A stretch of DNA of 64,000 nucleotides from Paragordius varius. Lineage: Eukaryota > Animalia > Nematomorpha. Of this stretch, positions 8,655 to 63,369 are shown piece after piece. The position numbers and the translations under genes were made by a program. The stretch spans positions 12,338,001 through 12,402,000 of the forward strand of contig OZ176052.1 in assembly GCA_964247055.1 (NCBI GenBank), written 5' to 3'. How positions within the stretch are numbered: the first letter of the stretch is position 1; every line of letters begins with the position of its first letter. Under the pieces are notes generated by a model that was not told where the DNA came from, ran no database searches, and saw nothing but the letters and a program-made list of their open reading frames with translations.

Positions 8655-11600
8655 ATGTATTGTGGTTTCTTAATGCTTATATCGTTGGATGGATTTATGT
8701 GGAATTATTTAGAAAAGCATGGATTACACAACTTTCCAAATTTTATCAAAATAATTGAGACAGGAACTCTAGCTAAGCATGTAAAAAATCAGTTTTTGAC
8801 AAAGACATTCCCCAATCATTATACAATCGTTTCGGGTACATACGAAGAATATCACGGACTTGTTAATAATGAAATATTTGATGGGCGATATAATATGACA
8901 TTTAATCCAGGTGATACGAGTTATGTTTGGTGGGAAGATGCGCCTGAACCGATATGGTTAACGAATCAACAAACGAACAAACACTGTTTAAATAAAAGTG
9001 GTGCTTATATGTGGCCAGGTTCAAACGTAAAGATAAAAAATCAAATGCCTACTTACTACACAAATTTTACCAAAAAATATCCTCTTTCTGAAAAATTCAA
9101 AGATGCAATCCAAGCCATAAGTAACAATCTAATTAACTTTGCCGTAATATATCATCATCAACCAGATGAATCAGGCCACCTTTATGGACCATATTCCCAA
9201 AATGTCGCCGATCAAATCAAAAAGATTGATAATGATTTGGGATATTTGTTAGGGCTTGTGGCCGATCACGGTTTAACCAACATTTTAAACATTATTATAA
9301 CAAGTGATCATGGTATGACTCAAATGAATTCCGGTAAAAAAATTATATTATCGAAACACTTTGATGTTTCTAATGAAGAGGTCGTTTTTAGTGGTTCATC
9401 CCCAACATGGAACATTTTTTCAAATAATAGTAAATACTCAATTATATTTGTGAAACAATTTTTTTTAATTTATTCAAACGTCGAAATTCATTATAAATAT
9501 TATCATTGTTTACATAATAATATTCAGTCATTTCTCATAAAGGTTCCAAAATTAAATTTTAATTATATAAATGATCCCAATTAGGCCAATTACTGAATCA
9601 AATCAAAAGCGTTTTTGGTGCCAAATTATTTGAAGGCAAGCTTAAAATATACACCAAAAGCGAAATTCCAGATCGATGGCATTATAAAAATAACAGAAGG
9701 ATTGGGGACTTACTCCTTGTAGGCGAACCCGATTGGACTATCTCAATGTACCCTGATAGTTATGATTTGGCATTCAATGGTATATGTAACATTATTTCAT
9801 TATAATTTCGACACAAATTTTTTTGCCCATTTTTTTACCTAATTATCATCTTTTTTTAATCTTTTTTTTTAGAAGATTTACTTCATAGATTTCAAATTAC
9901 CGAAGATGAAATTTTGACAATAATTGATACATATGGCTTTTAAAAAATCATAAACAATAATGAAAAATATTTTTCATTAGCTAAACTCTCGAAAAAAAAG
10001 TCAAACAGTTGTTGCATTCTTTTATAAATATTCATTTATTTGCAGTGGTTTCTAGTGGTGACATGAATCAAAAATTGAATATTTTTTAGGTAACCATGGT
10101 TACGATAATGAATTGCCTGACAGTTGGCCAATATTTTTAGCGACTGGACCAGCTTTTCGCAAAGGTTTTGTTTCAGAACCAATCAATAACATTGATATTT
10201 ATGAACTCATGTGTGCCATATTGAATGTTATACCTGCCCCTAATAATGGCTCAATCGAAAACATTAAGCATTTACTCACACAAGTAAATTTTTTATGGAA
10301 TTTTACATAGCTAAATTGTTGGATACTGAATCATTATCCCCAATATGAACTCTTTTAAGAAAAATATAAATATTTTTGTTTGTTTATTCATTTTTATTGA
10401 ATAATTACAAAAAACTATTTAACTAAATCTTAAAAAAGATTAATTACATTATCGTATTTGACTCATTATCAGACCTATGTAAAGAGAAGGTAAACGCAAT
10501 TTCCAATAGTTCTTTTAAAACAGGATCCTTACAGCTTATAGTGTATTAAGATCAACATTAACCAATTGGTTAATATGTCTGATAGAGTTTTAAACATTGG
10601 CGCTAGCTATTAGTTTATAAATTAAGTATTTGAATGCGTAATTTATTGTTAATATTATATAATCTCATAAAAACCTTATATATTGACTTTATTTATCTAT
10701 ATACCTCTTTTATTCATAACTAAAATGTTTCTTTATTAATGACCAAGGTTAGGTTAAATATATTATTTATTTATATTTATTTTATTTTTTACCGTATCTA
10801 ATTGTTATGTTTAGAAACTAATTATAAAAATACGCTAAAAAAATATTTACCTTGCTGCTAAAATTAAATATATAGACCCAGGTATAGTTAAATTGACTAA
10901 CATTTAATTCCTTTACATTTTTGAAATAACCAGAATATTACGAATCGGTGATGAAAATACAAAACAATAATAATTTATTAAGGATTTCGTGATATTTATA
11001 CTTTTTTATTAATGACAATTTTAACATGCATGTGCGTCACAATTGTAAGAATATGTCTTTTACTCTACGAATTTCACGAATAATGAGACGCACGCACATA
11101 AACGCCAGATGCGATTAATATAATAATATGATGTAAGATAAAAATACAATGATGCAATGTTGTAATATCAACTACATATCATTCTCTTCATCCTCTAAAA
11201 AACGCTTAGGAGGTTTGCGGACTCGATCTGGATAACGCCTGGGGGCCTCACTCTGCTCACCATTCGACCTCAGTTAATCGGCATGTTTCCGCATCTCTTT
11301 TCCATCTTCATCCTTTACTTCGTAGGATAACGGCCCCGTCCTTACTTCCACCGTACCCGGTCGCCATCCTCTTGATGTCTCGTTCTTTATAAATATTGAC
11401 TGATCCGGTGTAAATTCTCTTAAGGGTCTCGGTGGTGTACTTTCTTTAGGCGTTTCTTTATCTTGCAACCAATTCAACGGTGTGTTGATGTTTCTCTTCA
11501 AAAACAACGATGCGGGAGTCGTCTTAATCTCGTTATGCCATGAATTACGATAGGCCAATAAAACATTATTTAAAGCCTCCTGACTCTTCACGCCAGGCAT

Positions 11601-15552: not shown

Positions 15553-18475
15553 TGTGTTGTTTGCTAAAGTCGATTCTGACTAACTGCAACATTGAAAATA
15601 AAGCTTCTCCATTCACTGCGATTTCCGGTTTTGGTGTTTAGTTCGGATAATGATTGTTTGGTTTCTTTGAGGATGCTATCCATCCAACGAGTTCGTCTTC
15701 TCCCTCTTCTTCGGGCACCACTCACTTTCCCCAGCATCAGTGATTTTTCAAGTGAGCTGATGTGCCCGAAGAAGGAGAGCTTTTGCCGTGTTAAGTTGCC
15801 TAGAAGTGACATTTCTGGGTTAATTTTATTTAGAATGGTGGTGTTTGAAACTTTGTCCGTCCATTTTATTTGAAGAAGTTTCCTCCAAACCCATAATTCG
15901 AAAGAGTTTATTAGACGTTCGTCATATTTTTTCAGTGTCCAGCTTTCCGCCCCATACATGAATGTGGGGAAAACTGTAGCTTTGATTAATCTGATTTTGG
16001 TTTGTAGTTTAATGTCATGTGACATCCAAATCCTGTTATATTTAAAAGTTACTGCTTTAGCAATAGCAATTCTTCACTTTATTTCAGGCGTAGAGTTGTT
16101 TACATTATTAATAATGCTACCTAAGTACGTGTAGCTGCTAACTGTTTCGATCTGGTTGCCGTTGAGGATTATTGGTTTGAGCCGGATTTATTTGCATGAC
16201 TTTTGTTTTTTTGAAATTGATATTTAATCCAAATTTATTGCACTCAGTTGTAAACACTTTCAAGGCTTGCGATAATGTGTCTACACTGTCTGCGAATAAG
16301 ACTGTATCATCCGCGTAGTGAACGGATGTAAGTAGGTTCCCACCTACTTTGATGCCGTAAGTTTGTGGGATATTTCTTATAATGCACTCCAGGTATGCGT
16401 TAAAAAGAATTGGTGATAAAACGCATCCTTGACGGAGGCCGACTTGTACCTTACATGAGTCAGATATACCGTGAGGTGTAGATATTACAGCCGTGGAATT
16501 TGAATAAATTGAAAATATGATGTTGATTAAATGTGTTGACACTCCGAGTTGTTTTAGAGCTTTCCGTAGTTTATTGTGCTGGATAGAATCAAATGCTTTG
16601 GAAAAATCGACAAAGCACAAATGCAATTCTTTGTTAAATTCGATGTGTTTCTCAATCCACCTCATGTTACATATCATATCTCGGCTACCTTTTCGAAAAC
16701 CAGCCTGAATCGTGGATATCTCGGGGTCAAGAATGGAATTTAGACGAAACTGTATTATTTTTAGGAAAACTTTGGACACCTGGTTTATGAGCGCTATGGT
16801 GCGATAGTTGTCGCACAGTTCTGGGTTACCCTTTTTTAAAATCGAAATCATAATGGATGTGCACCAATCCTCAGGAATTTTTTCCATCTCAAATATGGTT
16901 TGAAATAATTTGGTGAGTATATCGATTGGAATATATATTTTATTATTTCAGTAGGGATGTCTCTGTGGCCCTCTGATTTGCCGGTGCTAGAGTGTTTTAT
17001 CGCGAGTTCCACTTCTTCTTTCATAATAGGTGGTTCTTTTTGTTGAGTAAGTTCGTTAATAGTCTGGGGGTTATTTACGTTGTATAGTTTACTTATGTGT
17101 TTATGCCAGAGTTTGCGAATTTCGTCTTTTTCAGTGACGATTGAGTTGTTGTCGTTTCTCATAGGTCCCTTATAAAAAACTTTTTTGTGTGGAATATTAT
17201 TGTTTGCATGGGCAAAAAGGTTTTGGTTATTTTTGGCGTCTGTTTCTAATTATCATAGTTGGTCATAATACTTATTTGTGTCCTCTCTTGCACTCTTCTG
17301 AAATTCGTTGTTTAGTTGTTTGCATTCATCCCATTTGCATTTGATTTTGTATTCTCTACGTTTTTCTGCGATCTCGAAACTTTTGGTTGACAATTTTTTT
17401 TTGTGTTTTGCGTTTGAGAGGCCGAATGAATTCGTCAGCTGTGTCTCGGCAGATTGTATATATATCGTTCCAAAAGAAGTTTATATCCTGATAGTTTTCG
17501 GAATTATGATCAAGACAATCGAAACGATTTGATAAAGCGGTGCTAAACTTGTCGCGATTGTATCATAATATAATCTTGTTCTTGTGGGTTTGGATGTTTT
17601 AGGAAGTTGTAATTTAATGCGGAGTTTGGCGAACAATAGGTTGTGGTCGCTGTAGCAATCCGATCCTGGTAGGCATTTGACATTATGAAATGAACTTTTG
17701 TATTTTACCATACCTAATATGAAGTCAATTTGGTTACAACGCCATGTGTATAGTCTTTGGGCTTTTTAAAAAAGCTGTTTGCGACGAAGAAACGATGGTT
17801 AGCACAAAATTCAAATCTGTCTCCCTCTCGTTTTTTATGCCCAAGCCCATGCCGCCCGTCATAGGAGGTGTTTTGTCTATTCCGATGATTGAGTTGAAGT
17901 CGCCGAAGATAAATATGATATCCTTTTTTGAAATTTGGGAAATCGCCAAGTCGAGATCGCTATAAATTTTTTCACAGTCGTCATCGCTGTAAGAGGAGGT
18001 AGGTGCGTAAATTTGGAGGATAGTAATGGGTTGAGGGGTTGTTTGTATGCGGATTGCGATAATACGCACCGTTGTATTTTGACGAGTCGTGGCCGGAATA
18101 ATACAAAATATGATTGTCAAATTCTAAGGTTCCGGTAGAGGGAATGAGTGATACTGAAATTCCTAGTATGTCAATTTTATGCTTAGTCATTTCATTAACG
18201 ACAATATCTAGTTTGTGGTTTTTGTAGGCTCCGCGTAAGTTCCATGGGGCTATGCGGATGCTCAGATTACGTGATTTCAACATTAGCAGAATGTGCTTAG
18301 AATGGGAGAATGTGAATAGGAAATATGTTATGGATATGTAAGGAATAGAATCTAACTATTTCTAATATCCGGAGAAGGTATAAAATAAATGTTTTTGGTA
18401 AAAAAGATCGATAAGAATGGGTAGGTATACCATACCTTTCCCACTCGATTAAAAGCATGTGTTTACATGCGTGAA
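15553..18475 (-). mobile_element. RTE-clade LINE B (BovB-like, near full length, frameshifted) nested in the LINE A RT
   Basis: APE (WNLRG, QIYAPT, GDFN, SDH), RT (QAGFRKG, VDFSKAFDS, GLRQGCVLSP, YADD) and C-terminus TKIRLIKATVFPTFMYGAESWT...SLEKSLMLGKVSGARRRGR; ATG shared at both junctions. Confidence 0.9.
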
Positions 18476-23270: not shown

Positions 23271-25815
23271 ATGATGTATTGCGGGTTATTAATGCTAATA
23301 TCGCTGGATGGATTTATGTGGAATTATTTGGAAAAGCATGGGATCAATAACTTTCCAACCTTTGCAAAAATTATTAAAAATGGGACAATTGCAAAGCATG
23401 TAAAACCTCAGTTTTTGACAAAGACTTTCCCCAATCATTATACTATTGTTTCAGGGATATATCAGGAATATCACGGAATCGTTAATAATAATATGTACGA
23501 TGAAAGATTTAATTTAACATTTAAACCAGGTGATACCGATAAGATTTGGTGGGAAAATGCCCCAGAACCTATATGGAACACCAATCAACAAGCCAGCACA
23601 CATTGCTTGAACAAAAGTGGTGTATATATGTGGCCAGGCTCAAACGTAAAAATACATAAACAATTGCCCTCACGATATTTAAACTTTTCCAAAAAAGTTC
23701 CACTTGCTCAAAAATTTAAGCTTGCAATCAATGCTTTAAGCAAAAATGAAATTAATTTAGCCGTAACATATCATCATGAACCCGATCAAACAGGCCATCT
23801 TTTTGGTCCCAACTCTCTCAACGTTGCCGATCAAATTAAAATGATTGATAAAGATTTGGAGTATTTGTTTGCACTCATAACCGAACACGGTTTATCAAAT
23901 GTGCTCAATATTATTATAACAAGTGATCATGGTATGACCCAATTAAATAATGACAACAAAGTAATCCTTTCCGATCATATTGACGTTGCAAATAAAGAGG
24001 TCATATTTAGCGGATCTTCTCCAACTTGGAACATTTTCTCTAACAATAGTTAATCTTTTTATCTTAACGCATAACTGAATTTTAAAATTATTTAATGTTC
24101 TACATATATTAGGGGGTGGTATATTTGTTAAAATAGGAATTTTATTTTAAAAAACATAATTATTTCAATTTTAATATTATTTGCTTTTAAATTTGTTTTT
24201 TATTTTAAATCATATATATTACCCGTTATAATTTTAAATTTGATTGGTAACATTTATTTTATATATTTGTATTATTTAGATTTATGCAATCTCAATTAAC
24301 ATTTTTCAAATTTCCCCCTAAAAATAAATTATCTGTGTTTTAACTAATATAACTCATTCAACCTTTATCAACCTTTAATAATATAAAATGTATCTTCATG
24401 GCATAGTTTATTATTTTTTCGGTAATTTTAATTTAAATCAAAGTTTTATTATTTAAAAATATATGAAAATATAAGTAATTATTAATCTTAATGAACATAT
24501 AATTTTTTGAGGGTGAATTTGAATTGTAAATGGTATATTACCAATGCATATCTTATTTGATTATATTAATACAGTAAGAATACAGACTCTTAAATACTAA
24601 AAGATTTTTTTAAATCTTGATTTTTTTAACATATAAAATCATGGATTGGGGTTTCGAAATCAAGATTAGAGTTCTAAATTGCTAATGCACTCAATTATAA
24701 TAATTTAAAATTATATTTTATGCAAAAAGGATAGAAAAAGTATGAAAATCTTTATAAATAATATACTGTTATGTTGTTACATTTCCTATATAATTTCAAT
24801 ATTTACTCTAAATTAAAACTTACTTTTTGCATTTTTTACAGGTCAACTTATCAATCATATCAAACAAGTATTTGGCGCTAAATCTTTCGAGGGAAAACTT
24901 AAAATCTTTGCCAAACATGAAATTCCAGATCGTTGGCATTACAAAAAACATTGGAGAATAGGGGATTTGCTTATTGTAGGGGAACCGGGTTGGAGTATTT
25001 TTTTGCATCCAAGCAAATTTTTTGCAAAATTGCAAAATGGTATCACACAAATGTTATATCTATAAAAATTTTGTTTTTTGTTAAACTTCATATTATATTT
25101 TAGGTAACCATGGTTACGACAATGAATTGCCTGACAGTTGGCCAATATTTTTAGCGACAGGACCAGCTTTTCGCAAAGGTTTTGTTTCAGAACCAATCAA
25201 TAACATTGATATTTATGAACTCATGTGTGCCATATTGAATGTTAAACCTGCCCCTAATAATGGCTCGATTCATCGAATTAAGCATTTACTTACACAAGTT
25301 TATACAAATTGTTTTCTTACATAAAAATTAGTAAAATAAAGAATTTTTACTATAAAGAAAATCTTATTTTTTAAACTGTGCTTTTTCGAATTTAAGCCTC
25401 TGTTTTGGGTTGCAAAAAAAGGGATAGAGATAGATATAAATTTTTAGCATACACTTTTATATTTCACATTGTAATGATTTAGGATGTATAGTAAATTGTT
25501 TTCTATATAAAAATGAATTTTAGCCTTTTACCTTTTATTTGTCCTTATCATATAAATTTTACTGTATTTGTTTTATAATTTAGTGAGAAATTAGTAAAAA
25601 CAATGTTAGAACAGTAAATCAATTGATATTTTGCGGTCGATATATCATATATAATATTTTGTTTTTAATATACATTTATCAAATAGGATTATAATAGTTC
25701 ATCCAATTATCGGGCGGCCAAAACAGATCTCAAATTTATAAATCATAGCTGTCACCTTGAAAATTTTGTATGGATTACAAGCGCCCTAACTTTATTATGC
25801 AACCTTTTCTATTAA
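23271..25815 (+). CDS. ENPP4/5/6-like paralog B; exons 23271-24048, 24842-25039, 25104-25297, 25687-25815
   Basis: Same motifs and same three intron positions and phases as paralog A; last exon DYNSS...FVWITSALTLLCNLFY* aligns with the paralog A tail. Confidence 0.9.
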
Positions 25816-28986: not shown

Positions 28987-30519
28987 TTAAAAAATCATAG
29001 GACTGAATGAAATGCGTATATATTTTTCTTTGTTGTGCTTTCCATCATAATCTGGTTTGGCAACGGTGTTATTCAGCAATACAAGTGCTTTAATTCCGTC
29101 CTCAATTTTTGGTAACCGAACCAAAGCCATACTTCTAGAAGATGGCATAAACTTGAAACGCTCAACGTCAAAACCATCTTTGTGAAACATATCTTTAATA
29201 TCATCCTCCGTAACGTTAGATGGTATATTAGAAATGTGCAATACATTACTTGGTCGACATAAGTTTTGATAATTTTTGCTACCTACTTTGCGGTACCTAT
29301 GAAGGGATGAATTGGAGTAATCTTTGGTCAAGCAGAGATTTTCTTCGCCGCGCATTGGAGTAGCTGGCGCAACTATTTCATCATGCTTAGAAGTTTGTAT
29401 TTTTATTGGACGATCAAACACAATAGAATTATTTAAGAGATCTAAAACGTGGGCGGCTTGAGTTCTGTCCATCATTTGTACAAGTGCGGTGTCACGCTTA
29501 TTATACAAAATCTTAACTTTGGCAACATCCCCAAAAGCACCCAACAATGAAAATAACCGATCAGGATCTGACATTTCTGAAGCGAGATTACTTATCAGAA
29601 GAACAGAAGTATCCGGTTTTTGAGTTGGACCGTCGCCTAAAGATCTTCGATTATGATCACGACCACGAGGTGAAGGGGAACGTCGACTCGAATGAAAATA
29701 GTCTGACTCTCTACGAGATCTGTCATTATTGAATCCGTTTTTGTTCACAGCAGTTACAGAACTAAGGTTAGCTGCGGCAGCTCCAAAAACATTTTGAATT
29801 AATTGCGGGCCAAGTAAAGATGCTAAGGGATTCAGAATGTTTTGATCTGGTAGGCTTGACATAAGGGGCAAAGGCCGCGATGCAGTAGATATTGGATCAA
29901 GCGTAAAATCCCGACAATTTGGGTCATTTGGAATAATGTTAATATCATTTCGTTTATGAAAATCGATAGAAAGTCTGCAACAATCATTGTATATATACTG
30001 ACCGTCAAGTGCGGTGCGAGCTTTGGAAGCAGAGTATGAATCTGGATATTGAATCAAAGCAAAAAAATCACCGTATTTTTGAAACATGGCAATTTTTATA
30101 ACATCCCCATGTTTAGAAAAAATTTGGTGCAAAATTTCAATTGTTATCGGAACCGTTTTTAAATCTATCCGAACTAAAAGTACAGGACAAGGTTGAACTT
30201 TGCTTGGTAATTGATTTGATGATCCATCTTTGTTTGAAATGTAGAACTTTTTTCCTTTGTAATGAATATCAAAATAATTAAAATATTTTTTTAATGCAGT
30301 AGCGGCGTATTCAGTTTCCATCTCAACAGTGGCTTCAGACTTATTTTTGAAAATCACTCTTCTAACAGGACCAAAAGGTGCGCACAAATATTCTAAATCC
30401 CTTTCATCTGCATCAGGTGGAATATTTTCTATATCGACTATATTCAATGTTTCATCGAACTTCCGTTTAAAAGTATCTGGAGAATGGCCTGAGCCATTTT
30501 GAAAGCTTCTATTACTCAT
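28987..30519 (-). CDS. PTBP1: Polypyrimidine tract-binding protein (PTB/hephaestus-like), 510 aa, single exon
   Basis: Four RRMs in PTB arrangement: LHQIFSKHGDV...LDGQYIYNDCCRLSIDF (RRM2), SVLLISNL...VKILYNKRDTALVQM (RRM3), LTKDYSNSSLHRY linker, LHISNIP...RISFS (RRM4). Symbol denotes the family, not proven orthology. Confidence 0.92.
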   Translation of the reverse strand: MSNRSFQNGSGHSPDTFKRKFDETLNIVDIENIPPDADERDLEYLCAPFGPVRRVIFKNKSEATVEMETEYAATALKKYFNYFDIHYKGKKFYISNKDGSSNQLPSKVQPCPVLLVRIDLKTVPITIEILHQIFSKHGDVIKIAMFQKYGDFFALIQYPDSYSASKARTALDGQYIYNDCCRLSIDFHKRNDINIIPNDPNCRDFTLDPISTASRPLPLMSSLPDQNILNPLASLLGPQLIQNVFGAAAANLSSVTAVNKNGFNNDRSRRESDYFHSSRRSPSPRGRDHNRRSLGDGPTQKPDTSVLLISNLASEMSDPDRLFSLLGAFGDVAKVKILYNKRDTALVQMMDRTQAAHVLDLLNNSIVFDRPIKIQTSKHDEIVAPATPMRGEENLCLTKDYSNSSLHRYRKVGSKNYQNLCRPSNVLHISNIPSNVTEDDIKDMFHKDGFDVERFKFMPSSRSMALVRLPKIEDGIKALVLLNNTVAKPDYDGKHNKEKYIRISFSPMIF

Positions 30520-44500: not shown

Positions 44501-47500
44501 TTTTGCGCTTTGTAAAATGAGTTGATTACAATCGGATTGGAAAAACATAAATTTTAACGAGTTTTTTTTGTAAAATTTTGGCGGTTTTGGTTTAACCTTT
44601 GTACGACTGATTTAGTTCTTGATGATAACAACAAAAATAAACATATCATTTATAATTATTGTGTGCTATTTGTGTCTAAAAATTTTATAAAAATTTAAAT
44701 GAAAGAGAAAGCATAATTTAAAGTTTAAAAACTTCACTATTTTGGAACTATTATTAACGGTTTTACAATATGGTTCCGGTATCATACCTTCTCGTTGTAT
44801 ACTTAAACTTAAACATAATTAAATTTTAATTATATATATAATTACCGTTTAAATTTTTATTATATACATGTTTTTATTTATTTCATCTTCTTTTATAGTC
44901 AGTCTATTATTAAATACCTCAACTCTTTAATAATTAGATTTACTTCACCAAGCAAAAAATGAGTATTATAGCGCTTTGAATACGTCTCCACAAGAAAATA
45001 CGAATCGAACCGAAACCTTAAATAAATCACCATCGCCGCCACCCTTCTCCGATGTTTTGAATTTACTGTTAGCTAAAAAACGCATCTCCTCGACAAATAA
45101 AACTCCAACTCCTCATAATATCAATGTAAGGCACGTCATGTTTTCAAACATTAAATCACTCATAACTTGTGATATTGGTAATCCCCTAACACAAGGCGCT
45201 AAATTAGAACTTGATGTACGATTCGAAGTCAGTTACAATGATATGTCCCAACTTTATGAGAATACAGATGGTGACACTTCGACACATTTAAATTTCATAT
45301 TTTTCCTCAATAGCAGTAATGCTGAAACGGTGGAATCGCGCTCCGATAATGTTAAACTCATATCGGTTCCGTTTGAAACTACCTCGGATTTAGTCATTTA
45401 TGGGTTAATTTTTAAAAACTATATAGATTTTTACCGAAGTTTTTATAAAATATTTTATAATATTATTTTGTATTTGTGTTGATCCGAAGAATTAATTATG
45501 CTGATATTACATCATATTATTCTAAAACTAAGGTTTATTAATATATTAATTTATAGTATTAAATATAAAATTTAATTTTACAACTATTCTCTGATAAATT
45601 TTGAGTCTAAATATCTTTTTGCCTTTATATCTATATAATATAATTCTTTACCTCTATTTAGTTTCAATTTATACTGTAAATTATCATAAATCATATCCTA
45701 TTCTACTATAATATTTTACTTAAAAACTTTTATTGATATACGAAAATGTTTAGTGCTTGTATCCCAGATCAAGTCATATATTCGGTGGACGACAATGATA
45801 TACAACCTGCAAATTATATCAATGAAACTAATATTGGACCACAACTTATTCACGTTTTTGAGGTAAAAATGAATATAAACATGATATAATACTAAAATAA
45901 ATTTATGCAAAGGGCTGATTTTAGTTAATTACAGAAAAAATCCATAAGCTATATTCTATTGAGATGCGTTATTGAAATAAAATATTTGCGCTTTTTTAGA
46001 TCGTTAATAAAGGTTACACAACTATAACGAAAGCTGAATTAAGCATTCTATGGCCAAGTTATTATCGAAGTCCCACACCTCTTGGGGGTAAAAGGAACCC
46101 CAAAGTCCTACCTTTACTGTATTTGATGGAAAGACCAGTCATTGATATTCATGGGACAGATCTAACTGTATCTTGCCAAATGGATGTGGAAGAAATTAAT
46201 TCGCTTGGATTGAAGGTGAACAACGAAATATATTTATTTTTGAAAACAAATGAAAAAATTATGCACAGTAACGTATGGTTATAAAACTAAAATAAAGTTT
46301 AATATTTAACATATTTACATTTTATTTGAACTTGACTAACGTTTATGTCCACCTCTTGGATTGGATTAATAAATTTCATCAAATGCATTTAAAATAATGT
46401 TTCATCAAATGGAAAAGCGCGAATGATGGTCAATTACATTTTTTCATCGGAATACCTTATTTTTTAGTTTAAATTTGATAGAAGGATATTTTTTTATCAA
46501 AGATAATTTCAATCATCATTGGTATGGGTTAAATACAAACGGTTATTTTTAAAAATTTAAAAAATGGCTTAGTTTTAAAAAAGCGTATGCTCGAATAGTA
46601 TTGCTCAAAAAAATGATAAAAAATCATTCATTTCCCACATAAGAAAAATGTGTAAAATCACAAATATTTTTGATTGAATATTGTTTTTTACACCATTTTT
46701 AGATTGATAGGAGCGAACGATGGAAAGCTATTATGAACTCATCCACTGTTCATAATACAAAATTTAGTCCTTTAAATCAAATAAATCAAACTTTACCGCG
46801 ACAATTACTTTTTTCTGACCCTGAACATTCATTGCCTTTTAACATTGAAAATAAACGGGGTGATTACAATCTTAAACACCATTCTGCAGAAAATGAACAT
46901 TTAAACGCTTTTCCGGACCACGATAAGCGCATCAAACGTGAAATTTATAATGGTATAATGATTGTTTATATTTCATGAATGTTTAATAATTTTTTATATA
47001 ACCTATGGTTATACGTGTTTTTAGAATAAGTTGACACGATCATTTATTTTCATATTTCGGTATAATATGAATAAATATTTTGGAAAACAAAAAAATTAAA
47101 AATAGTTTTAAATTCAATCTTTGTAAAATTTCTTTCAATAAATTTGTTGTTAATAGATGAAGCGCGATTTTTGCTCCAACACCCTCCAACAAGTAATTAT
47201 GATTCAATTCAAGTTGCTAAATTGCCCTCTACAAATACCGAATTCAATCAAAAAACTTACGATAATGAAAATTTCATGTCAAATGAAATTGTATATACAT
47301 TTATAAATATATATATATATATATATTTATTTATTTGCTAATATTCAATGCTTTTTATTTAGAAATATCGGTTCTCATTTTTCTTTGAACCAAAGAATAA
47401 GATTTTCCCTAAAGTTAAATATCGACCGCTTCAAGCGTGTAATCAAAATAATTTATTTTAGATTTTATCGATTTCAATTAGGTTACCTGTCTATTTTTTC

Positions 47501-49239: not shown

Positions 49240-52200
49240 TTAGTTGTTATTTGAAATTAGAGAGGTGTATGGGTTAATTTTAGATGGTGCTGCTATAAAT
49301 GAATGCTGTTGACTATTTTGCGGATTGTTATTGTTGAAAACAGGCAAAGCGGCAGCTGTATTCATAGTTTGTGGAATCGTTGCCATGGTAACCGACGTTG
49401 AATCCTCAGAAATGGCAGGATTTATCATTCCTTCTCCCGCCGTCGTTGTTAGCTCCAATCCAATCAGCTGGAGATCATCTTGAAGGGGGCTATTTGTGGT
49501 AGTAGCAGGAGAAACTGCAGGTGTCTTTTTCCCACAACACGTTTTGGGTGCACAATCGAGTGTCCCTCCACACAATAAAAGACATCTATAAAATAATGCA
49601 TGAGAGCGGTCACCCTTGAAAAATTCAAATTCACCCTTGAAAAATAAATTATGAAACTTCGGTCTAATATAACGCACTCCATTAAAATTAAATATATTTT
49701 TATGGGCCAGTTTATTATTTTTTCAGTATTATTTTGATTACATACAAAATTTCGTTTTTTTATAAATATAAAAAATATAGGTAATATATAATCATAAAAA
49801 ACACATAATTTATTTTAGGGTGAATTTGAACTGTAAATGGTATATTAAAAAAGATTACATCACATGTTTAACAAAGAGTGTGCTAATATTTTTGGGTGAA
49901 AGTCCGAATTAGCATAAATGTTTTTGGATTTGTTTTGTGACAAATATTTTTTATCCTAACTTTATTTAAACTAAAAAAAATGGGGCGCAGAAGGTAAGGT
50001 TTTTTTGTAATGAGCCATAATTCGAAAAAATTTTTATCAAATGATTTTGATAAATATGGGTTAAGAGACTCTCCATTCAATATTTAAAACCTGATTGGTT
50101 ATATAAGGAAATAAGTTGACATAATATGCTAATTTATTATTAAATTGTAGCTTTTTTGAAAAATTTAACTCCTACGCTTTATCTCTTTGAAAGCTATTGA
50201 TTAAAAAAATATGATTGGCTTTAAATTTGGTTTGTGAATTTAGGAAAGGGCAAAATAAATAATTTATTAAAAAACGGAAAATTAAGAGCGATAAATATAA
50301 GATACTAGTCTAGGGGTCAAAAAATCCTTTTTTACTCAAAAATTGCCGATAAAAATAGAATTATATGGGCGATCAAAAAAAATTATTGATGTTTTAAACA
50401 ACCAAAGTGGTTTATTATCAACTTGCTATAAAATAAAACAAAAATATTATTTATCTAATCTCTGATTTGTCTGTGCGTAAATGATTTATCTATGTTAAAA
50501 CGCAAAATAAAAGAAAAGCGACTATAAATAATATCACGTATGAAAGAAGGCGATATATTATTTCCGCGTACTTTATAGCTAAAGCAAAAAAAAATATTCA
50601 AAATTAACCAGTGCCGATAACACATAAAAAAACCTTTGAAAAATCGTAAAAAATATTTCTATCAATTTTTTTGACCAAACTGACAATGTGAATTTCAAAA
50701 ATTTAATCATTCAAAACATAACTATTAGGAAAAAATATTTGATATTTTGCTATTCACCTATATCTGACCCTAAATTATTTACATAAAGATGTCTTATTTG
50801 AAAATATGATATCCATATCTAAAACAAAATTACAAAAATCTACTATACAAATTTCACAAATAATATTTGTGTTTATACAGGTTAATAATTAAAAGGGTGT
50901 CCAACAAAAATGAATTCGTAAACCGCATTCATAATTTAGTCTTTATATTTTTTATCCATTTAATAATAATAAGTTTTTAAAATTAGTCATTACACTAAAA
51001 TGTATCAATTGCAACATTACACCCTATATATCCAAAAATATACTTTTACTTAACACAAAAAACTTTTACGAATCGTTTAATGCATTTATAAATATCTATA
51101 CAACTAGAAATATTTTTTAAAAAAAGGCAAAACCCCCAAAATTTTTATATATAAATAAGAAAAAAATGGCAACTATTATGATTGAGAAGAAAAACTGATA
51201 TATAGATAAAAACCAACTTTTCTTCCTCTTCAGTCAAGGGCATTTCCACAAACTCGGGTTGAATCGTAGTTGAATGTATCCCTTCTCGATGGAAAAAATC
51301 TTTAACTTTCCCAGCAATGCTCATGTAATCAGCCACGTTTCGGCATTGAATGTGTGCTGAAGCAATGATTCTATTACCAGCCAATTGCCAAACATGGAAT
51401 TCATGAACAGCTAAAACACCATCAACACTGCGTAACAATTTTTCCCTCAACTCATCAACCTTGAGGTGTGAAGGAACCGTTTGTAACAGTATAAGGGCAG
51501 ATTCACGCAACAAAGGCAAAGTGGTAGCCAGTATTATGGCGACAAGCACGAGACTCATACACGGATCAATGTAATAGCGCCAATCTCCTTTAAAGTACAT
51601 GATAGATAGAGCACTGATTATAACGATTACTGAGCCGAGCGCATCTCCAAACACGTGGAGAAACACGCCTCGCATATTGAGGTGTGTGGCAGAATGTTGA
51701 ACGTGTTTTTCATGTGACTTGCCACCGTCTTCAGAGTCGCGCATAAACGGAGCGTGACTTTTGTGGTCTGAATTACTATTATTATGAAAAGAAACGGTTG
51801 TGGAAGGTGGAGGACCATTTAGACTTGTTTTGGAACCTGGCAATCATATGTATGCGGTTAGTAAAAACAAAAAATGAATGGTATAAAATTAAATTCATGT
51901 TTATAAACCTAAAATCGGGAGGCAGACGACAAAAAGAGTTAGTTTGAATGGCAAAAATAAAGTGGTGAAAATATGTTATTGTAGTTTTTATTATATACTC
52001 TCAAAAACTTCTTTATCTAATACGCATATATTTTATCATGCTATGAATCACTTTAATTTGAAAGATATATATTATATATCAGTGTATTTTATTCACCTGA
52101 ATTTGGGTAGAAAGCACCGTTGGGCAAGTGTGATTTCGAATGCATACGCTCATCATCCAATTTTGTTTTATCGTTAATAGTATTTTGCTGTGAATCCATG

Positions 52201-53067
52201 TCTTCACTCACAGTTCTGCAGAAAATTGAATTATCAACGTCAAAACAAATTAATATCATTATTATTAAAAAAATTTTGTTTTAGTTTGGATTAATAAATA
52301 TTTTAACGGTAGAATACTAAGATTACATCAGTCAAAAAAGACAGCTATAAATTTTGTGAAAGAAAATCTATATATATTCATTTTACTTGTAATCATTTAT
52401 ACTGTAAGCGTCATTAACGTCGTTCTGCATATCGACTGCCGCATCAATAAACCTGGCACCGCTCATATTGAGTTTATCAAAAGAGCCCAATCTTTCCCGA
52501 GACCCTTTTCTATTAATGTCCAATATATTGGAAGAATCTTTGTAAGTTGGTTCTAAAATAGTTGAGCAAATTAAAAAAAATTAAAAATGAATTATCCAAA
52601 TCATAAAATTTAAAAAACATACCAATGTGAGCATGGGAATGGCCATGTGAATGTCCATGAGAATGACCATGGAATAAGGCAAGACCAATAATGTTAACTA
52701 CTAAACCAAGGCCTCCTATAAGCAAAAGAAGTTTATAATCGTGCACTTTTTCCAGCACAATAATCCGTTTAATAGCCTCAACAAATATGGAAAAGCAAAG
52801 AGCTATGAGAAAAACTGCATTTACCAATGCACCAAGGACTTCAGCTCTGGCCCATCCAAAAGTGTTTTTCTTAGAACGGCGTCTAGAAATCCGAACAGAA
52901 AAAAATCCGATCAATAAAGCCATGACATCCGATAACATATGAAAAGAATCTGCAACTAAAGCCATTGAATTAGTAATATATCCCACAACTATCTCAATAA
53001 AGAAAAACATAATTGTAAGGGCCAACATGGTTAATAAGCGACATGTTTTCCCCGAATATTTTCCCAT
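49240..53067 (-). CDS. SLC30A1: Zinc exporter ZnT1/ZnT63C-like (CDF family); exons 53067-52623, 52552-52387, 52215-52097, 51836-51218, 49585-49240
   Basis: MGKYSGKTCRLL; DSFHMLSD (TM2) and LHVFGD (TM5) give the HD-HD zinc site; NTFGWARAEVLGAL; (GHSH)n loop; HEFHVWQL, FFHREGIHSTTIQPEF; Cys-rich C-terminus CLLLCGGTLDCAPKTCC. Real start is ATG 53067, not the TTG used in the ORF track. Confidence 0.95.
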
Positions 53068-54999
53068 CACGCTTGACTTCAAATCCAAGTGTTTTTATGA
53101 CACAATAATAGAATCGTAAAACTATCAAGTAAAAAATGACTTCTTTAAAATATATATTTTTATTCATCAATATTTATTATTAATTTAATATATTTTTACC
53201 GAATAATTTAATTTAAAATATTAAGCGCATTAAATAACACTTTATTAAATTTTGGTAAAAAATGGTTTTGTAAACCAATATATATTTAACAAAAATTTAA
53301 AAACTATTATGATCAATGTTTTGCATCGTAATGATAAAAATGTTTTTGTAATATTTTAGCGCCTTTTTTACCGTTTTCATTATGCCCCAGTATAAAGTAC
53401 GCTTCAACATAATTTTGCTGGAAATTAGATTTTGGAAAATATGCCTATTTTAACTATTATTAATTGATATCAAAATTACATATATTTAAATTTTTTATCC
53501 CTTATCTGGACATTGCCTATATTTTAGGAGAGCTTTTTTAGAAGCGCAAAATAATTTGGGACTTTCGGCGGCATCTATAAATTAAATTATTTTAAAAATA
53601 TGTTTTGCTTTCAAATGTAATTTATGTACATAGACGATAAAATGTCTTGATGAAATTAATATATTCTCATTATAGAAATATATTTTTGGTCTTTACGAGT
53701 GATATAAAGTTATATTTATTTTTATGCTCAGTGTAAAAATGGCGAAATTTGATTATATTTTTTGCAATAAATTTAAATGATTAAAGCTAAATGCTTTATT
53801 CCAAAAAATATCACTTAAATATAAATACTTATAACAAGCAAAACAATATTGTTATAATATTTTAATTTATAGATGTGTGCTCGAAAGTGCCTAATTTGTT
53901 TCTTTTTAAAAAGTTCATAAAAATAAACGCGAAAATGCGGAATTTATAAATTTCAAAACATTTTTTAAAAAATGAACTTTTAGAAAAATTCTATCAAACT
54001 GAAGCGTACTTCTACTATTTTTAGTCATGATTAAGGTGACCAGATTTTTTAGAGGAAAAAGCGGGACAAATCTCAGAAGGGGGAGGGTCATTGGAGGGTG
54101 CAACCAAATATTTTTATACAAAAAATTTTTTGTAAATATATATCTATTTTTAACACAAATACATTATAAATATAGGAAAATTTGTACCTCACAGTTTGTA
54201 CCTTATTCAATAAATTTTACATGTGCACGAACAAAGGGTGAAGTGATTGATTCTAGAAAATATAATAAAGACGAAATCATCACAAAGTGCGCTGGGTGAT
54301 GCAAGAAGCAGCACAAAAAATATTTTTAACAATTTAGCGAATAATCTTAATCAAAACATTATTGGCAGATACACAAAGCTATTCAAACAGCTACTGATTT
54401 GTTACCCCTGGATGTGGAAAATATAGATGTTAAAATGCTTGGATATTGTAGAACTGTTGGTTAGCTCTTTTGCCAGCGATTGAAATATTTATAAAAATGT
54501 GATCTCCTGAATCCTATTTTTTATCACAGGACAAAGGTCAAAATTTCAAGTCAAAAAAGGTTAGAAAATAATCTTATACATTACCTAATTATAAAACATC
54601 CAGAAAAACAAGGCTCAATGAATAGTCATATAAAAATGTTTTATACAAACAGAAACGATTATTTGGAAGACAAGACGGTGCACAATGACACTTTTCTATA
54701 AAGTCTCATTATTAAATAAATATATGAAAACTTATTATGGACAACAGAAACAAATACGTAGGATAGAAATGGTTAAAATAATCATTTTAAACAAATTATG
54801 TTCCTTACAATAATATTTTAATTGTAGAATTTGATTTATCTTTACCTGAACCACTGCTATTGAACGCGTTTTTCCACATTAAATTAAGTAAGGACACGGA
54901 ATCAAATTTAAATGTTGAATAAAAGCCATTTTATGATATAATTTGACAAATTATGAAGACTTATACAATAATTTAAGTAATTTTGTCTTTAAAGAAAAA

Positions 55000-57260: not shown

Positions 57261-58139
57261 AGTAGTAGGAAGCAAATTGTATATTCACATGATATAAATT
57301 CGAAAAAAATAAATATTTTTAATTTAAAAATAAAAATTTTAATTTAAAATTGAATAGATTTTAAAGATATTTAATGATAAAAAAATTAAACGGATAAAAA
57401 AAATTATTTGCCTTAAAAATAAATTTTTTTACCTATCCGTGAAAAAGCGGGACATTTTAAAAACGTAGCGGGACGCGGGACAAAGTGTGGAAAAGCGGGA
57501 CGTCTGGTCACCTTATCTTTAACACAAAATTATTTATAACAAAATTAAAAAATTATTATTCATAATAAATTCAACCAATAAATCTATTTTGGTAAAAAGG
57601 ATTTATTTTCATTTTATACGCTCTCCTTTAAAATTACGGAGGGTACTATGTAATTAATAAAGTGTAATACGATTTTTTATTAACTCTTGATAATTATTAC
57701 GACCAAATCTTAAAAGGGCCTTTTGCAATATTATTATTACAGCGATAAGGAGTTTTACCATTTATAGGCGGTAGTAATATTAATTTTTTTGGAATTTCCA
57801 TTTGTTTATATTAATAAATCTCCGACAATGTTTAGTTGAATAAAGAAAACTTGAAAATTATATTTTATGGCTTATAGCCTCCGGATTTCTTTTGGATCTA
57901 ATAAATTTTTTATATTAATGTATGTACAATATTTTAAACAGGGCCTTTGAAAATACTCTGCATTTTAGGGTAGCGCTTAAGGTAGTTTTATTTAATTAGG
58001 TTTTATATTGATTATGTATTATAGTGTTATTTTAAATGACATCATCGTTACATAGCGATGAAGGGTTTATATTAACTTTGCTTTGATTGTTGAATCATAA
58101 AAGTGTTTTAATATTATGAACTTTAAAACATTTTTAACG

Positions 58140-61100
58140 ATGTGTTGTTGTTGTGGGAGTTGTTGTGTGGGAGGAGAGGCAGAAGAAATTGTCAGGAACG
58201 CTGGTGAGGAGGGGACAACAGCTGATTCAAGGAGGAATCGAGTCTGTTGTCCCCGGTGGAAGAAACCGTGGGGGTTCTTCCACAAGAGGAGGGTGGATCA
58301 TCTGGGTAAGATTCTTTAAATATTTCTTGCTTGCTGCTTTTAAGAATGCAAGTTTAATTTATCCTAATGCTAATTAATTATTGTTTAGATGGCGGTGACG
58401 GGGAGCATGAGAAGAATTGGTTAGGAACCCTGAGAAAGGTGTTCCGTAAGAAGCCTCGTCCCCCTCCAGGTATTATAAGCCTACAATTTTTTAAGAAATG
58501 TCGTGTGCTACGGCAAAGTTGGTAAATCTTTTTTACTACCCAATCACTTTGTGAAATACTATTTTTAAACCTTTAATAATAATCTACAAAACCAAAACTT
58601 TTATCAGTTATAATAATAATAATATAAATTCAATTTTATATTTCATCATAGCGATGATCGTAAAATCTGTATCATAATAAGGATAATTTATGGATGTATA
58701 AAGTTAATTACCTTGCAAATTCATAAGCGAATAAAAAAATTGTGTTAAAAAAACGTTAATCTTAATATAGAGAAAATGATTTAAAATACTAGTTCCGTTG
58801 CTCATCAAGTTTTCATTTAAGGTTTCGATATGTATTAAGGTTTTTATTTGTAAAAAATAATATCGATCAGATTTAAGCGTACAAGATAGTCGAATAAATT
58901 AATATTTTTGTATTATATATGGTGGTTTGTTTAATTATATATTTAGATGCCAAACAAGAAAAACCAGGAAATGAATCAGGTAAATACAGAAAAATATATA
59001 TTAATATTTAAGTACGAAGAATGTTTTGATTAACATGCCAATTATAATCAATTTAAATCGATTCTAACAAAGTTTGATATTCAAATTACCATTTAGTTGT
59101 TGTTATTACAGAAAAATATTTTTTATTTAGTTTACTACAGTACCTTGTCTCCAAAAGAGGGCGCTGGTGATTTCGTCGAGCCTGCCCAAACAAGTATATT
59201 AAAAATATAATGTCATAAAATTAAATTAGGACTTTTCTTTGTTTAATAATTTAATTATCAGTTTGGTAAAACGTTTGTAATTGGAAAAAATATCATTTAA
59301 TCAAAAATAAATTTAATTTTAACTTTAACTCTTTTATAGAAAACGAGAAATCGGCTTGCAAAACTTCATCATCTCCGTTCGGTTCTGCTAAAAGTTGTTG
59401 GCATGAACGCACATGTATGATTTAAAATTATTTTAATATTTAAAAGGGAAAAAATTGTTTTAATTAAGACATTGATCAAAGAAAATTTAATTTATTGGTC
59501 TATAAATGTTAGATTTACATAAAAAAGGAGAAATTGATTTAAATATCAGACACTTTATAAATACCAACTGGAATTTATAGACTATAAAAAAAACATGGAT
59601 TAAAAACGAAAATACATACCACTAGCAAAAGTTAAATATTGGTTTATAAAATCGTATTAAACAAGAAAAATACTTTTACAGTATAATAAATATGCATTCG
59701 ATTGAATTAAGCTAGAATATCCATACGTTATATTTTAAAGAATATTAAATCTATTAAACATTTGTATAAATATATAGGATATAGTCGATTGGATTTATTT
59801 TATCTGTTAATGCCAAATATATCTTCACTTTATTAAATACATATCTTTATATAAACTTATCATTATATCCCTAGAAGTCAACCCGACCCCCGACGCAAGT
59901 AGACGGCTGTCACTGAACCACCATTGACTGGTGTTTGGAAGGGCAGCAAGGGACGTCTTTTGTGGACAGTGGCGACGTGGGTCTGCTACACCCTTTTCTT
60001 GATACACCTTGATTTATAAAATATATGGAAATTTATTTAAAAACGTGTCATACCAAATATATAAATAAAAAATGCGTATGGTTTTGTTCACTATAAAGGA
60101 TGTCCGTTTTCTCAGCGTTAAAATATAAGAATGGATGTAGAGACAATGGTTATTTTAAATATAATTTCTAAAAATATTTATTGTTCTTTTCCTCTATATT
60201 GAAATCACAAGTTAACACCTTAGAGGATAAAACCAATTAAATTTACAAGACATAAGTTGTAAAACTAATTGAAAAAAACCAAAAACAAAAAATTATAATA
60301 ACCGAGGGAACAACACTCAGTTGAAAATAAAAGAGTCTATATATACTATCGTGTCGTAAAATAAATAATTATATTTTAAAATTATTATAATAATTGTTAC
60401 AATTTATTTATAAAATATGCAATAAATACTTTAGCCTCCAATAATCATGGTGCAGTTGATCCTCGCAAAGATGTAAGAGTAAATTTGTGTTTTATAAACT
60501 TATTCGATTTAAAAAAAATTGATTTTAGTGGATTTTATTTTTTTAATTTTTAAACTTTTATTTTTTTCGAAACAATAAAGGTTATCAATGACTTCCCGTC
60601 CAAATATAATGTCTGCAAAAAACTTGGAGAAGGGTATTTTTATTTAGTTTATAATACTTTATGAGAGTGTAGGTTGATTACTTAATAAATATATATTTAT
60701 TTTTAGGGCCTTTGGTACTGTATTCCTGGCCAAAGATCGTAAAAAGAATACCGTAGCATTAAAAAAGATAAAACTTAAGAACCAACACCTCGACCACGAT
60801 ACCGTCAATGAAATATTTTTACTGATGAATCTTAAACATCCCAACATTGTCAAATATCTTAATTCCAGTTTCTCAGGAGACAGTTTATGGGTAAAAGACT
60901 TATCTTATCACTTGAATTAATATTTATAATATGTGTCATTTCGCTCTTTATTAGTTTGCCTTTTCCATTATGTACAGATCATTATGGAGAATATTAATGG
61001 TGTCACTTTGTGGGATTTGAATCGTCGGAAGCTTTGCGAACCTGTACTAGCCTTAATCTGCCAACAGGTTAATTTTAGTTTTGTCTCACCAGCATCCAGA

Positions 61101-63369
61101 TTTTATTGCTTTATTGTTTGAGTCTTTACGGATGATTCTTTCCGATTTCGGTTTTTCTATAAAAGAGTTAAAATGCATGTTGCACTCTTATATTAATGAA
61201 CAAAAAGGAATAAATCTGGAATCTCATAGGTTTTTTTGGGTATATGTGTCATTTTATAAAACTTTTTCTATATTGGAATTACTATATATAAAAAACTAAA
61301 TTGGCCCATACTATGTGAAATTTCATGCTAAAGGCTTTCCGCAAAATCTTTTGTTAAACTTTTGCTTTAGAGGCGTGGCTTGCACTTATGGCGCCCACCC
61401 CCTCAACACCGTGCATTATAAAAGAATAATTAAATTTAAACATGAAGGTTAACACCTGTCATATTTAGATAATTTTTTTAAATATTATTTAAAATAATAA
61501 TTTAAATGCTTATTTTTTGAAATTAAATTAAAAAATTTAAAATCCGGTACTCCTTTAACTATGTGGTGCATCACCCTTTCCCTCTTCTAGCTACGCCACT
61601 GGCTTCTCTATAAGTTATTATCCCAAAGCAATCTTAGATTCTTGATGATAGAATTTCAAATATCTAGATCAAAGGTATCCAACACATGGCTTCGTACCGC
61701 TTTTGATTCAAAAAAACAGGCCCCTCTTCTACAAATGTAATGGAGTAAAAGATACTATCACTTTAAATTTGGCTTAGATTTGTTTACTTTAAAATCAAAA
61801 TGGAAAATATATTTAATCTTTGATGCCAAGATTTAACTATATTCTACCGTTTCCATCCTGCTCCAAACTACCATATATTTAAATAAATTTTAATTTTTTG
61901 GCCCATGCTTTTTTTCAATATATATTATCAGTTTTATAGACTAGTCACTAAAATTATGGCAAATTTTCTTATATGTTAATTTTACTAATACATTATACCC
62001 GCCAATATATAAGAGTTTTGCAGACTACAAAATTTAAATTTTATTTAGATATTATTTTGCTTGTAAATATAGTTTTTAATAATTTTGAATTCGTTTGGAA
62101 CAAAACTTATAAATTTTACTAGCCTGCTATATGACATAAAATTGATATAGTCCTTATATACAGCCGAAAAAAGCACCATGAAAAAATGCGTCTTTCTCTC
62201 AGAAGATATTTATTTAATTATGAATTTTTTTCCCGTTACTGTGCTGTGTTGCTCTACAGACCTTACAGTAATATTTAAATGTCAACTCAAATTATTACAA
62301 TTTCTTACATATTCTTTTTAACAATGCCGCTGTTGTTTATAGATCTTGCAAGCGTTATCGTACATTCACTCCAGATATGTTATTCATCGAGATATCAAAT
62401 CCAACAATATCATGATTGATACCAATGGCACAGTTAAACTCAGTAATATATTTCATAAAGACAAATCTATCAAAATATTTTCACATATTCAATTTATAGG
62501 AGAGCGAAAGCAAAAATTGATTAATAAATATTGGCATTTATAATTTGGTCATAACAATGTATTATTAACAAAAAAATTTAATTTATGTCTGTATCACATA
62601 AATTAACGTACATGAATTAAACCCTAATATATTACTATAGTTGATTTTGGTCTATCCATTCATGCAAACAATATTTGTGTCAAGATAGCGGGCACACCCT
62701 GCTACTTGGCAGAGGAAACCTATCTCTCTGGAATAATAACCTACAAAGGCGATATATGGGCCCTAGGCATCATTTGTATCGAGATGGTCGATGGGGAGAC
62801 ACCTTATGCACATCTCCATGCCAGCCAGGTATTTTTATCGATTTGAATTCAAACTTTTATATTCTCTTGTTTTATTTATGTTAAATATGAACATCTATAT
62901 TGTAAATTGTTAATAACTCACCTGTAAAATCAAATTTATTTACACGAGTTATTAACAATTTATCTGAAATTAAAAACTCTTACTCAAAATCTAAAATCTT
63001 TATGGAAATTGTTAGATCATGCAAAAAATGATTGTCCAAGGCAAACCATCAATTCCGTCTAGCAGCCTGGTATTCTACGATTTCATATCTCTGTGTTTGG
63101 AGGATGTATCAATACGTCCGTCAGCCGATAGACTTCTGGGGGTATGTATATTTATTACAATGCTATTTATTAATCAAATCAAATTTATTATGCAATCAAA
63201 CTCATTCATTATTTTGCAAAATGTTTAGCATCGTTATCTTGAAATAGCTGCTTCAAAAAAATGGCTTGGTCACATTGTAGCAACGCATAAAGTAACTTCA
63301 ACATTGAATGAACTTTTTTTTATAAAATATTCAACAAAAATTCAACATGTCCATATTTATGATAATTAA
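58140..63369 (+). CDS. PAK-like STE20 Ser/Thr kinase with a Cys-rich N-terminus (alternative ATG 58116); ~13 exons
   Basis: Exons 58140-58305, 58389-58469, 58947-58979, ~59131-59193, 59340-59414, 60435-60472, 60581-60633, 60707-60890, 60978-61067, 62343-62442, 62641-62828, 63016-63141, 63229-63369 give [58 protein letters not shown]-terminal exon joins are less certain than the kinase domain. Confidence 0.85.
59875..60013 (+). repeat. Longer (~140 bp) copy of the short GC-richer repeat, in a kinase intron
   Basis: GC-rich island in AT-rich intron; 3' 70 nt match 8378-8447. Confidence 0.8.
61368..61601. mobile_element. Small hAT-type MITE (degenerate) in a kinase intron
   Basis: Right end CTAGCTACGCCACTG; left end TAGAGGCGTGGCTTG is an imperfect match to its complement CAGTGGCGTAGCTAG; no clean TSD. 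Confidence 0.5.

Follow-up and report, generated by a model that had tools for sequence, protein, structure and literature searches.

Reviews describe p21-activated kinases (PAKs) as all possessing an N-terminal GTPase-binding domain in which CRIB is located (PMC8305917). In the group I members (PAK1-3), the N-terminus consists of an SH3 ligand, a basic region and CRIB, and a STE20-type kinase domain follows at the C-terminus. In this study, we analysed a stretch of 64,000 nucleotides from the nematomorph Paragordius varius (hereafter the window), which corresponds to positions 12338001-12402000 of contig C3 in a 110.5-Mb, 44-contig assembly; the non-coding DNA is very AT-rich. The window carries, at 58116-63366 on the plus strand, a 13-exon gene encoding a kinase with a C-terminal STE20-type domain like that of group I PAKs. 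However, its N-terminus is a cysteine string, and both CRIB (the p21-binding domain, PBD) and the autoinhibitory segment are absent. Our best reading, to which we would give slightly more than even credence, is that the gene and its relatives encode lipid-tethered, PAK-derived kinases that would work independently of GTPases.

Some soluble proteins are exclusively S-palmitoylated, relying on a weak intrinsic membrane affinity, and the N-terminal 20 residues of GAP43, when ligated to N-Ras, acted like other palmitoylated targeting peptides (PMC3010063). The Paragordius family resembles such GAP-43-type proteins in having a Cys cluster within the first ~17 residues, with hydrophobic and basic flanks and with neither Gly2 nor a CaaX box; it differs in that its string, with 4-6 consecutive Cys, is longer and joined to a kinase, that there is no sequence homology, and that acylation is only predicted here. 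Casein kinase 1 gamma and the yeast Yck kinases use Cys strings beside Phe and Lys/Arg as anchors, but these strings are C-terminal and the enzymes belong to another kinase group. For CaMKI-gamma (CLICK-III), the lipidation state sets both localisation and function (PMC10435254). Like that enzyme, the present family would combine a soluble kinase domain with a putative acylated-Cys tether set among Phe and basic residues; CaMKI-gamma differs in that its anchor is C-terminal, prenylation is also needed, and it is a member of another kinase group.

The coding sequence of the window gene extends from an ATG at 58116 to a TAA at 63364-63366 and comprises 1359 nt (453 codons including the stop, about 452 residues) in a continuous frame; all 12 introns have GT-AG borders, and no stop arises in any split codon. 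Exons 1-6 (160 codons) precede the kinase exons 7-13 (60581-63366), which places the kinase domain at the C-terminus, and they encode about 160 residues of low complexity, rich in Cys, in which acidic and basic segments alternate. The first-pass annotation of this DNA had placed the whole kinase at 58116-60472; that span covers exons 1-6 correctly, but the kinase domain lies outside it. The peptides quoted there were all located on the plus strand, the Cys-rich and basic ones in exons 1 and 2, HRDIKS in exon 10 and EMVDGETPY in exon 11.

The same 13 exons, colinear in order, orientation and phase, were found in eight paralogs on contig C5 (L030-L037). At the sites homologous to the window splice sites, the acceptor AG is kept in 74 of 80 cases and the donor GT in 73 of 76, and in the distant copies 82-93% of the exon sequence can be aligned versus 24-45% of the intron sequence. 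Summed per exon, the kinase exons have a ratio of non-synonymous to synonymous substitution rates (dN/dS) of 0.08-0.34, and exons 1-6 one of 0.2-0.5. For exon 1 alone it is about 0.3 at a dS of 0.7-0.9; therefore, exon 1 is a constrained coding exon. As order, phases and splice sites recur in eight paralogs under purifying selection, the exon features did not arise by chance, and we take the exon model to be real on strong comparative evidence.

Nine full-length copies make up the C5/C3 clade of the family; contig C8 contributes three or four genes (at least three loci), and there are many broken fragments. In the genome, exon 1 is matched 28 times (the window's own copy included) and exon 11 has eight close paralogs; all of these exon 1 matches and exon 11 paralogs outside the window lie on C5, between 1.11 and 1.64 Mb. 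In every full-length copy the Cys exon is located about 4 kb upstream of the kinase on the same strand. The C8 genes are the nearest kinases outside the C5/C3 clade, with kinase exons that are 43-59% identical and exon borders that coincide. Two of them (L047 and L048, which are ~75-80% identical to each other throughout) also have a Cys first exon on the same strand, 4.3-4.7 kb upstream, and a third C8 copy of this exon lies at C8:1502409. Moreover, the 5' flank seen in the C5/C3 genes has an alignable counterpart immediately 5' of the C8 first-exon ATG. Because the C8 clade has a homologous first exon and flank, the Cys first exon is older than the split between the clades and has been kept with the kinase since; it is thus ancestral to this kinase family. 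That the Cys exon belongs with the kinase exons, as the earlier annotation had assumed, is thus borne out by conserved synteny, by phase-compatible GT-AG junctions, and by first-exon homology across clades.

Exon 1 (58116-58305, donor GTAAGA, ending in phase 1) encodes the Cys run and an acidic stretch. The first-pass annotation had the protein begin with MCCCC, i.e., at the Met encoded at 58140. However, this residue is Leu in six of the eight paralogs, whereas the ATG at 58116, eight codons earlier, is kept in all full-length paralogs together with ~33 nt of conserved flank. Most likely, therefore, the protein starts at 58116 with MNFKTFLT before the Cys run, and all full-length C5/C3 copies open with these residues followed by Leu or Met and then the Cys run. 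The 33-nt 5' flank itself (58083-58115, plus strand), which has an in-frame TAA six codons upstream of the ATG, is probably the 5' untranslated region or the core promoter; it is near-invariant in the C5 paralogs and recognisably kept in the C8 clade.

In the window copy, six of nine residues in the run are Cys, and a second CC pair follows 30 residues further on. The Cys run is followed by an acidic stretch, the segment RNR-x-CCPRWK-x-x-WGFF-x-KRR, a second acidic stretch, and a basic amphipathic patch that also matches RxxPxxP (exon 2, 58389-58469, plus strand). The first exon of the C8 clade reads MKFIKF[FL]KK[ST]CCCCCC and continues with PVTDETVE (L047, L048). Across both clades M1, F3, F6, C11, C13 and V18 are invariant and L7 is nearly so, giving the family pattern M-x-F-x-x-F-L-x-x followed by four to six Cys. 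Residue 2 is Asn or Lys instead of Gly, and no CaaX is present at the C-terminus. A Cys cluster near the N-terminus beside hydrophobic and basic residues, as in GAP-43-type anchors, was found in both clades. The mean Kyte-Doolittle hydropathy over 19 residues is 1.16 for the window copy and 0.81 for the C8 clade. As a transmembrane helix calls for about 1.6, we judge that neither N-terminus forms one.

No CRIB motif could be found. All library and profile searches were made exon by exon, with separate exons as queries. Exons 1, 2, 4 and 5 had no Pfam PBD match at E<=1. A genome-wide six-frame search with PF00786 returned seven sites, all of them outside the window, the C5 cluster and the C8 loci, and tblastn of the genome's own CRIB peptides against all family loci yielded noise only. 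A stretch in exon 1 that recalls F-x-H-x-x-H-x-G was considered as a degenerate CRIB and rejected, as its His-His spacing is 5 rather than 2 and it has no PBD match. The absence of CRIB noted in the first-pass annotation was thereby confirmed, and we consider CRIB loss together with the conserved Cys-string start to be solid. Two of the seven PF00786 sites sit upstream of canonical PAK kinase exons. One belongs to a group-I-type PAK at C2:1464288-1469869, which has a textbook CRIB (ISHPTDFEHTVHVGF), HRDIKSDNILL and GTPYWMAPE. A second canonical-type PAK is present at C3:7257302-7265070 (L024, L051), with a significant PBD match and a degenerate CRIB core (GKPYNVKQIIHVS versus ISxPxxFxHxxHVG).

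All nine full-length copies, among them L037 with its in-frame stop in exon 8, have the catalytic motifs GxGxxG, VALK, NEI, HRD..N and DFG. However, the activation segment departs from that of PAKs. Compared with the canonical PAK of the genome, all family members have an activation loop that is 6-7 residues shorter, and the position of PAK1 Thr423 (three residues before GTP) is occupied by Lys or Arg. Instead of APE, the C5/C3 clade has AEE and the C8 clade has AYD or SYD. From these features we infer that the kinase would be active and independent of activation-loop autophosphorylation.

How might such a kinase be controlled? The family has lost the CRIB/p21-binding and autoinhibitory region, and the Cys-string N-terminus stands in its place. 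In the mechanism that we propose, the flanking Phe/Leu and Lys/Arg residues would give transient membrane contact, after which DHHC enzymes, for which there are at least eight loci in the genome, would S-acylate the Cys string. The acylated string would then act as a constitutive, potentially reversible membrane tether, replacing both GTPase-dependent recruitment and the relief of autoinhibition; with a constitutive tether, Cdc42/Rac would not be needed. PAK1 that is artificially targeted to the membrane is active without GTPases. Since the short activation loop has no phospho-acceptor Thr, GTPase-triggered autophosphorylation would give way to localisation, reversible acylation and expression as the determinants of activity. 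A fatty-acid membrane anchor is the most likely role of the Cys string, as both clades conserve the Cys run together with the Phe/Lys pattern.

Several points weigh against the proposal of a lipid-tethered, PAK-derived kinase. S-acylation is not reliably predictable from sequence, and the Cys positions are partly replaced by Phe, Ser or Arg in the paralogs, leaving only two invariant Cys columns. That exon 1 is spliced to the kinase exons is deduced from comparisons between the gene copies. The placement with PAKs is based on per-exon similarity and intron positions, and single exons have no more than about 42-55% identity to canonical PAK. Finally, the C5/C3 N-terminus, with its MNFK n-region, some 12 hydrophobic residues, and V-G-G before EAEE, resembles a cleavable signal peptide.

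This last point leads to what we rank as the main rival among the alternatives, namely that the N-terminus, being hydrophobic and rich in Cys, serves as a cleavable signal peptide or signal anchor and that the kinases are secreted or lumenal, conceivably as parasite effectors. An n-h-c layout can be recognised in the first 20 residues of the C5/C3 copies, where small residues occupy -3 and -1 ahead of EAEE, and the mean hydropathy over 15 residues is 1.67 in the window copy. The tandem expansion, recombination and many decayed copies are also as seen in fast-evolving effector families. However, the layout fits the C8 clade poorly: its exon, MKFIKFFKKS plus CCCCCC plus PVTDE, has four Lys in the would-be core, a 15-residue hydropathy of only 1.01, and no acceptable cleavage site before P-V-T-D. 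The two clades share a conserved Cys run and Phe/Lys pattern but no conserved hydrophobic core. Furthermore, kinases of the PAK type are cytosolic, and the mature part would here contain unpaired CC doublets as well as polybasic patches, both typical of binding to the inner leaflet. We consider a signal peptide unlikely, although the window copy is compatible with one. The Toxoplasma ROP kinases, a tandemly expanded secreted kinase family of parasites, share with the Paragordius genes a lineage-specific tandem expansion, divergent activation segments, decayed copies and a hydrophobic N-terminal segment. However, the Paragordius family keeps all catalytic residues and is of PAK-type origin, and its signal-peptide evidence is weak, and absent in C8. 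It is a still more doubtful idea that these are exported PAK-derived kinases of a parasitic worm, an animal analogue of the apicomplexan secreted effector kinases, with host cytoskeletal or behavioural signalling as possible targets.

As for the origin of the kinase domain, exons 8, 10 and 11 match Pfam Pkinase above its curated cut-off, and PAK1-3 are the best per-exon matches in PDB. HRDIKS-x-N, HPNIV-x-YL and IEM(V/I)-x-GE-x-PY are common to the family and the group I PAKs (PAK1-3 and the C2 orthologue). One might nevertheless argue for descent from a non-PAK STE20 kinase (e.g., a GCK-III or MST-like enzyme), with a superficial likeness to PAK. Exon 11 gives similar scores for PAK6, the GCK-III kinases STK25 and STK24, and PAK1-3; exon 10 finds PAK1/3 at 33.5 bits, just below a GCN2 entry, and CDK7 as well; exon 12 alone has no match in PDB; and CRIB is absent. 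However, exon 8 matches only PAK1-3 (E values of 4e-7 to 3e-6) before the scores drop to CDK2, and the genome's two canonical PAKs have HRDIKS-x-N as well. In addition, the group-I-type PAK on C2 is the only gene outside the family that is matched by exons 8, 10 and 11 together, and it shares four intron positions with the window gene, in equal phases (after ..LW; before [VI]L-x-AL; after VKL, in phase 1; and after NPLR/HASQ). A non-PAK ancestor thus seems to us improbable, and the comparisons favouring a group-I-type PAK are good but not conclusive; most likely, the family descended from a group I p21-activated kinase. Calling the product PAK-like, as the earlier annotation did, is justified by the per-exon matches and the introns; but as CRIB defines PAKs and is absent here, it is better regarded as a PAK-derived kinase than as a PAK in the strict sense.

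The family appears to be highly dynamic. The window gene arose by segmental duplication of C5:1114500-1121500 over at least 6.8 kb, with 90-93% DNA identity between the two, and has been relocated to C3. Divergence between the window copy and L030-L034 is mosaic: between the window and the group-A copies exon 1 has a dS of 0.10-0.16 and the kinase exons a dS of ~0.73, and L033 is window-like in its 5' half only, which suggests gene conversion or recombination among the paralogs. The regions C5:1127000-1362500 and C5:1620000-1630000 (L038-L046) contain at least 12 rearranged fragments, most of them without a start codon and several with in-frame stops. In five C5 fragments exon 4 runs straight into residues 41-59 of exon 11, most of the kinase domain having been deleted; these fusions appear to be copies of a deletion derivative that was propagated, be it as a pseudogene or as the gene of a short Cys-rich protein. 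Some C5 fragments are head-to-head partial copies of exon 1 that lack a start codon.

Such decay raises the question of whether the window copy might itself be an unexpressed recent duplicate, or its exon 1 part of a separate short transcript. The recent segmental origin, a fresh insertion of 566 nt in intron 5, and the abundance of broken copies in the C5 cluster, with the stop in exon 8 of L037, are in line with this. However, all 13 exons of the window copy are intact with canonical splice sites, dN/dS in the kinase exons is 0.10 relative to L030, the closest paralog, and the repeat insertion lies within an intron. We consider this explanation quite improbable. Least probable of all is that the Cys string forms a metallothionein-like Zn/Cu-binding or redox-sensing cluster regulating the kinase, since, even though Cys runs can bind soft metals and the run of six Cys in nine residues is followed by the second CC pair, there is neither a zinc-finger His/Cys spacing nor a Pfam match, only two Cys columns are invariant with the others changing to Phe, Ser or Arg, and a site at the extreme N-terminus beside Phe and Lys suits acylation motifs better.

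The remaining exons, all on the plus strand, complete the gene as follows. Three small exons in phase 1-1 follow exon 2, namely exon 3 (58947-58979, 33 nt), which is 90-100% conserved in all eight paralogs, exon 4 (59131-59193, 63 nt) and exon 5 (59340-59414, 75 nt). No match to exon 5 was found in paralogs L035-L037; because of its phase, loss of this exon would preserve the frame. Exon 6 (60435-60472, 38 nt, phase 1 to 0) is the last before the kinase domain. The latter begins in exon 7 (60581-60633) with the first half of the glycine loop (KLGEG), and exon 8 (60707-60890) provides the remainder of the GxGxxG loop, the VALK lysine, the alpha-C Glu (NEI) and HPNIVKYL. Exon 9 (60978-61067) encodes the hinge and alpha-D region, and exon 10 (62343-62442), whose borders are common to the group-I PAK of the genome, encodes the catalytic loop HRDIKSNN. 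DFG, the shortened activation loop without a Thr423 equivalent, and EMVDGETPY are found in exon 11 (62641-62828), and the C-lobe continues in exon 12 (63016-63141). The kinase domain ends in exon 13 (63229-63366), of which only 63229-63294 (to ..VATHKV) is conserved. The tail after ..VATHK (63292-63366) varies, with the paralogs reaching a stop 1-14 codons further on, and the GTA at 63292, which is present in all paralogs too, could be a donor. The true 3' end of the gene may be as modelled, or there may be a further exon beyond 63292.

The insertion in intron 5 (59446-60011) is specific to the window copy and absent from L030. Its GC-rich core (59860-60010) gave 131 candidates in a first look at the genome, and the 40 that were scored were 91-99% identical; the core is a young dispersed repeat, probably a short interspersed nuclear element or a miniature inverted-repeat transposable element. 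The GC-rich block was also considered as a missed exon, but it is a dispersed repeat in a window-specific insertion, and its in-frame reading opens with a stop. Exon 1 carries an imperfect palindrome (GGAAGAAACC..GGTTCTTCC), and antisense to it there is an open reading frame of 72 codons (58067-58285, minus strand) whose peptide mirrors that of the sense strand.

Beyond this genome, exon 11 was compared by HMMER with 1.84 billion cluster representatives, and no match exceeded 55% identity. The 150 best matches were mostly multi-kinase proteins and unnamed metagenomic kinases, and among the matches listed there was neither an N-terminal Cys cluster nor the AEE/AYD variant. A word search with exon 1, among proteins of 35-110 residues, gave no candidate, and in the literature we found no description of a palmitoylated or Cys-string PAK. 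The family thus looks lineage-specific, although the representation of this animal's relatives in protein libraries is uncertain. The possibility of a lineage-specific family, raised in the first-pass annotation, is in keeping with the expansion to nine full-length C5/C3 copies and the C8 loci, and with the lack of any relative found elsewhere.

Elsewhere in the window, Pfam content was detected at 5842-7044, 8655-9584, 16138-16887, 23271-24053, 28987-30519, 44976-45482 and 51145-53088. These seven regions contain two reverse-transcriptase open reading frames, two open reading frames of ENPP-type phosphodiesterases, an integrin-alpha fragment, a cation-efflux (ZnT) gene, and an intronless open reading frame of 510 residues for a PTB/hnRNP-L-like protein with four RRMs.

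PAKs are defined by GTPase control via CRIB, and the Paragordius family appears to trade this switch for a lipid tether and to drop the activation-loop phosphosite. If true, this would be a natural experiment on the activation of PAK by forced membrane targeting, and it would show how a signalling kinase can be rewired through the swap of a targeting module. The N-terminal 20 residues would also make a compact candidate tag for membrane targeting. Family size and tandem layout, together with the signs of gene conversion and decay, suggest a lineage-specific adaptive use of these kinases in a poorly studied group of animals.

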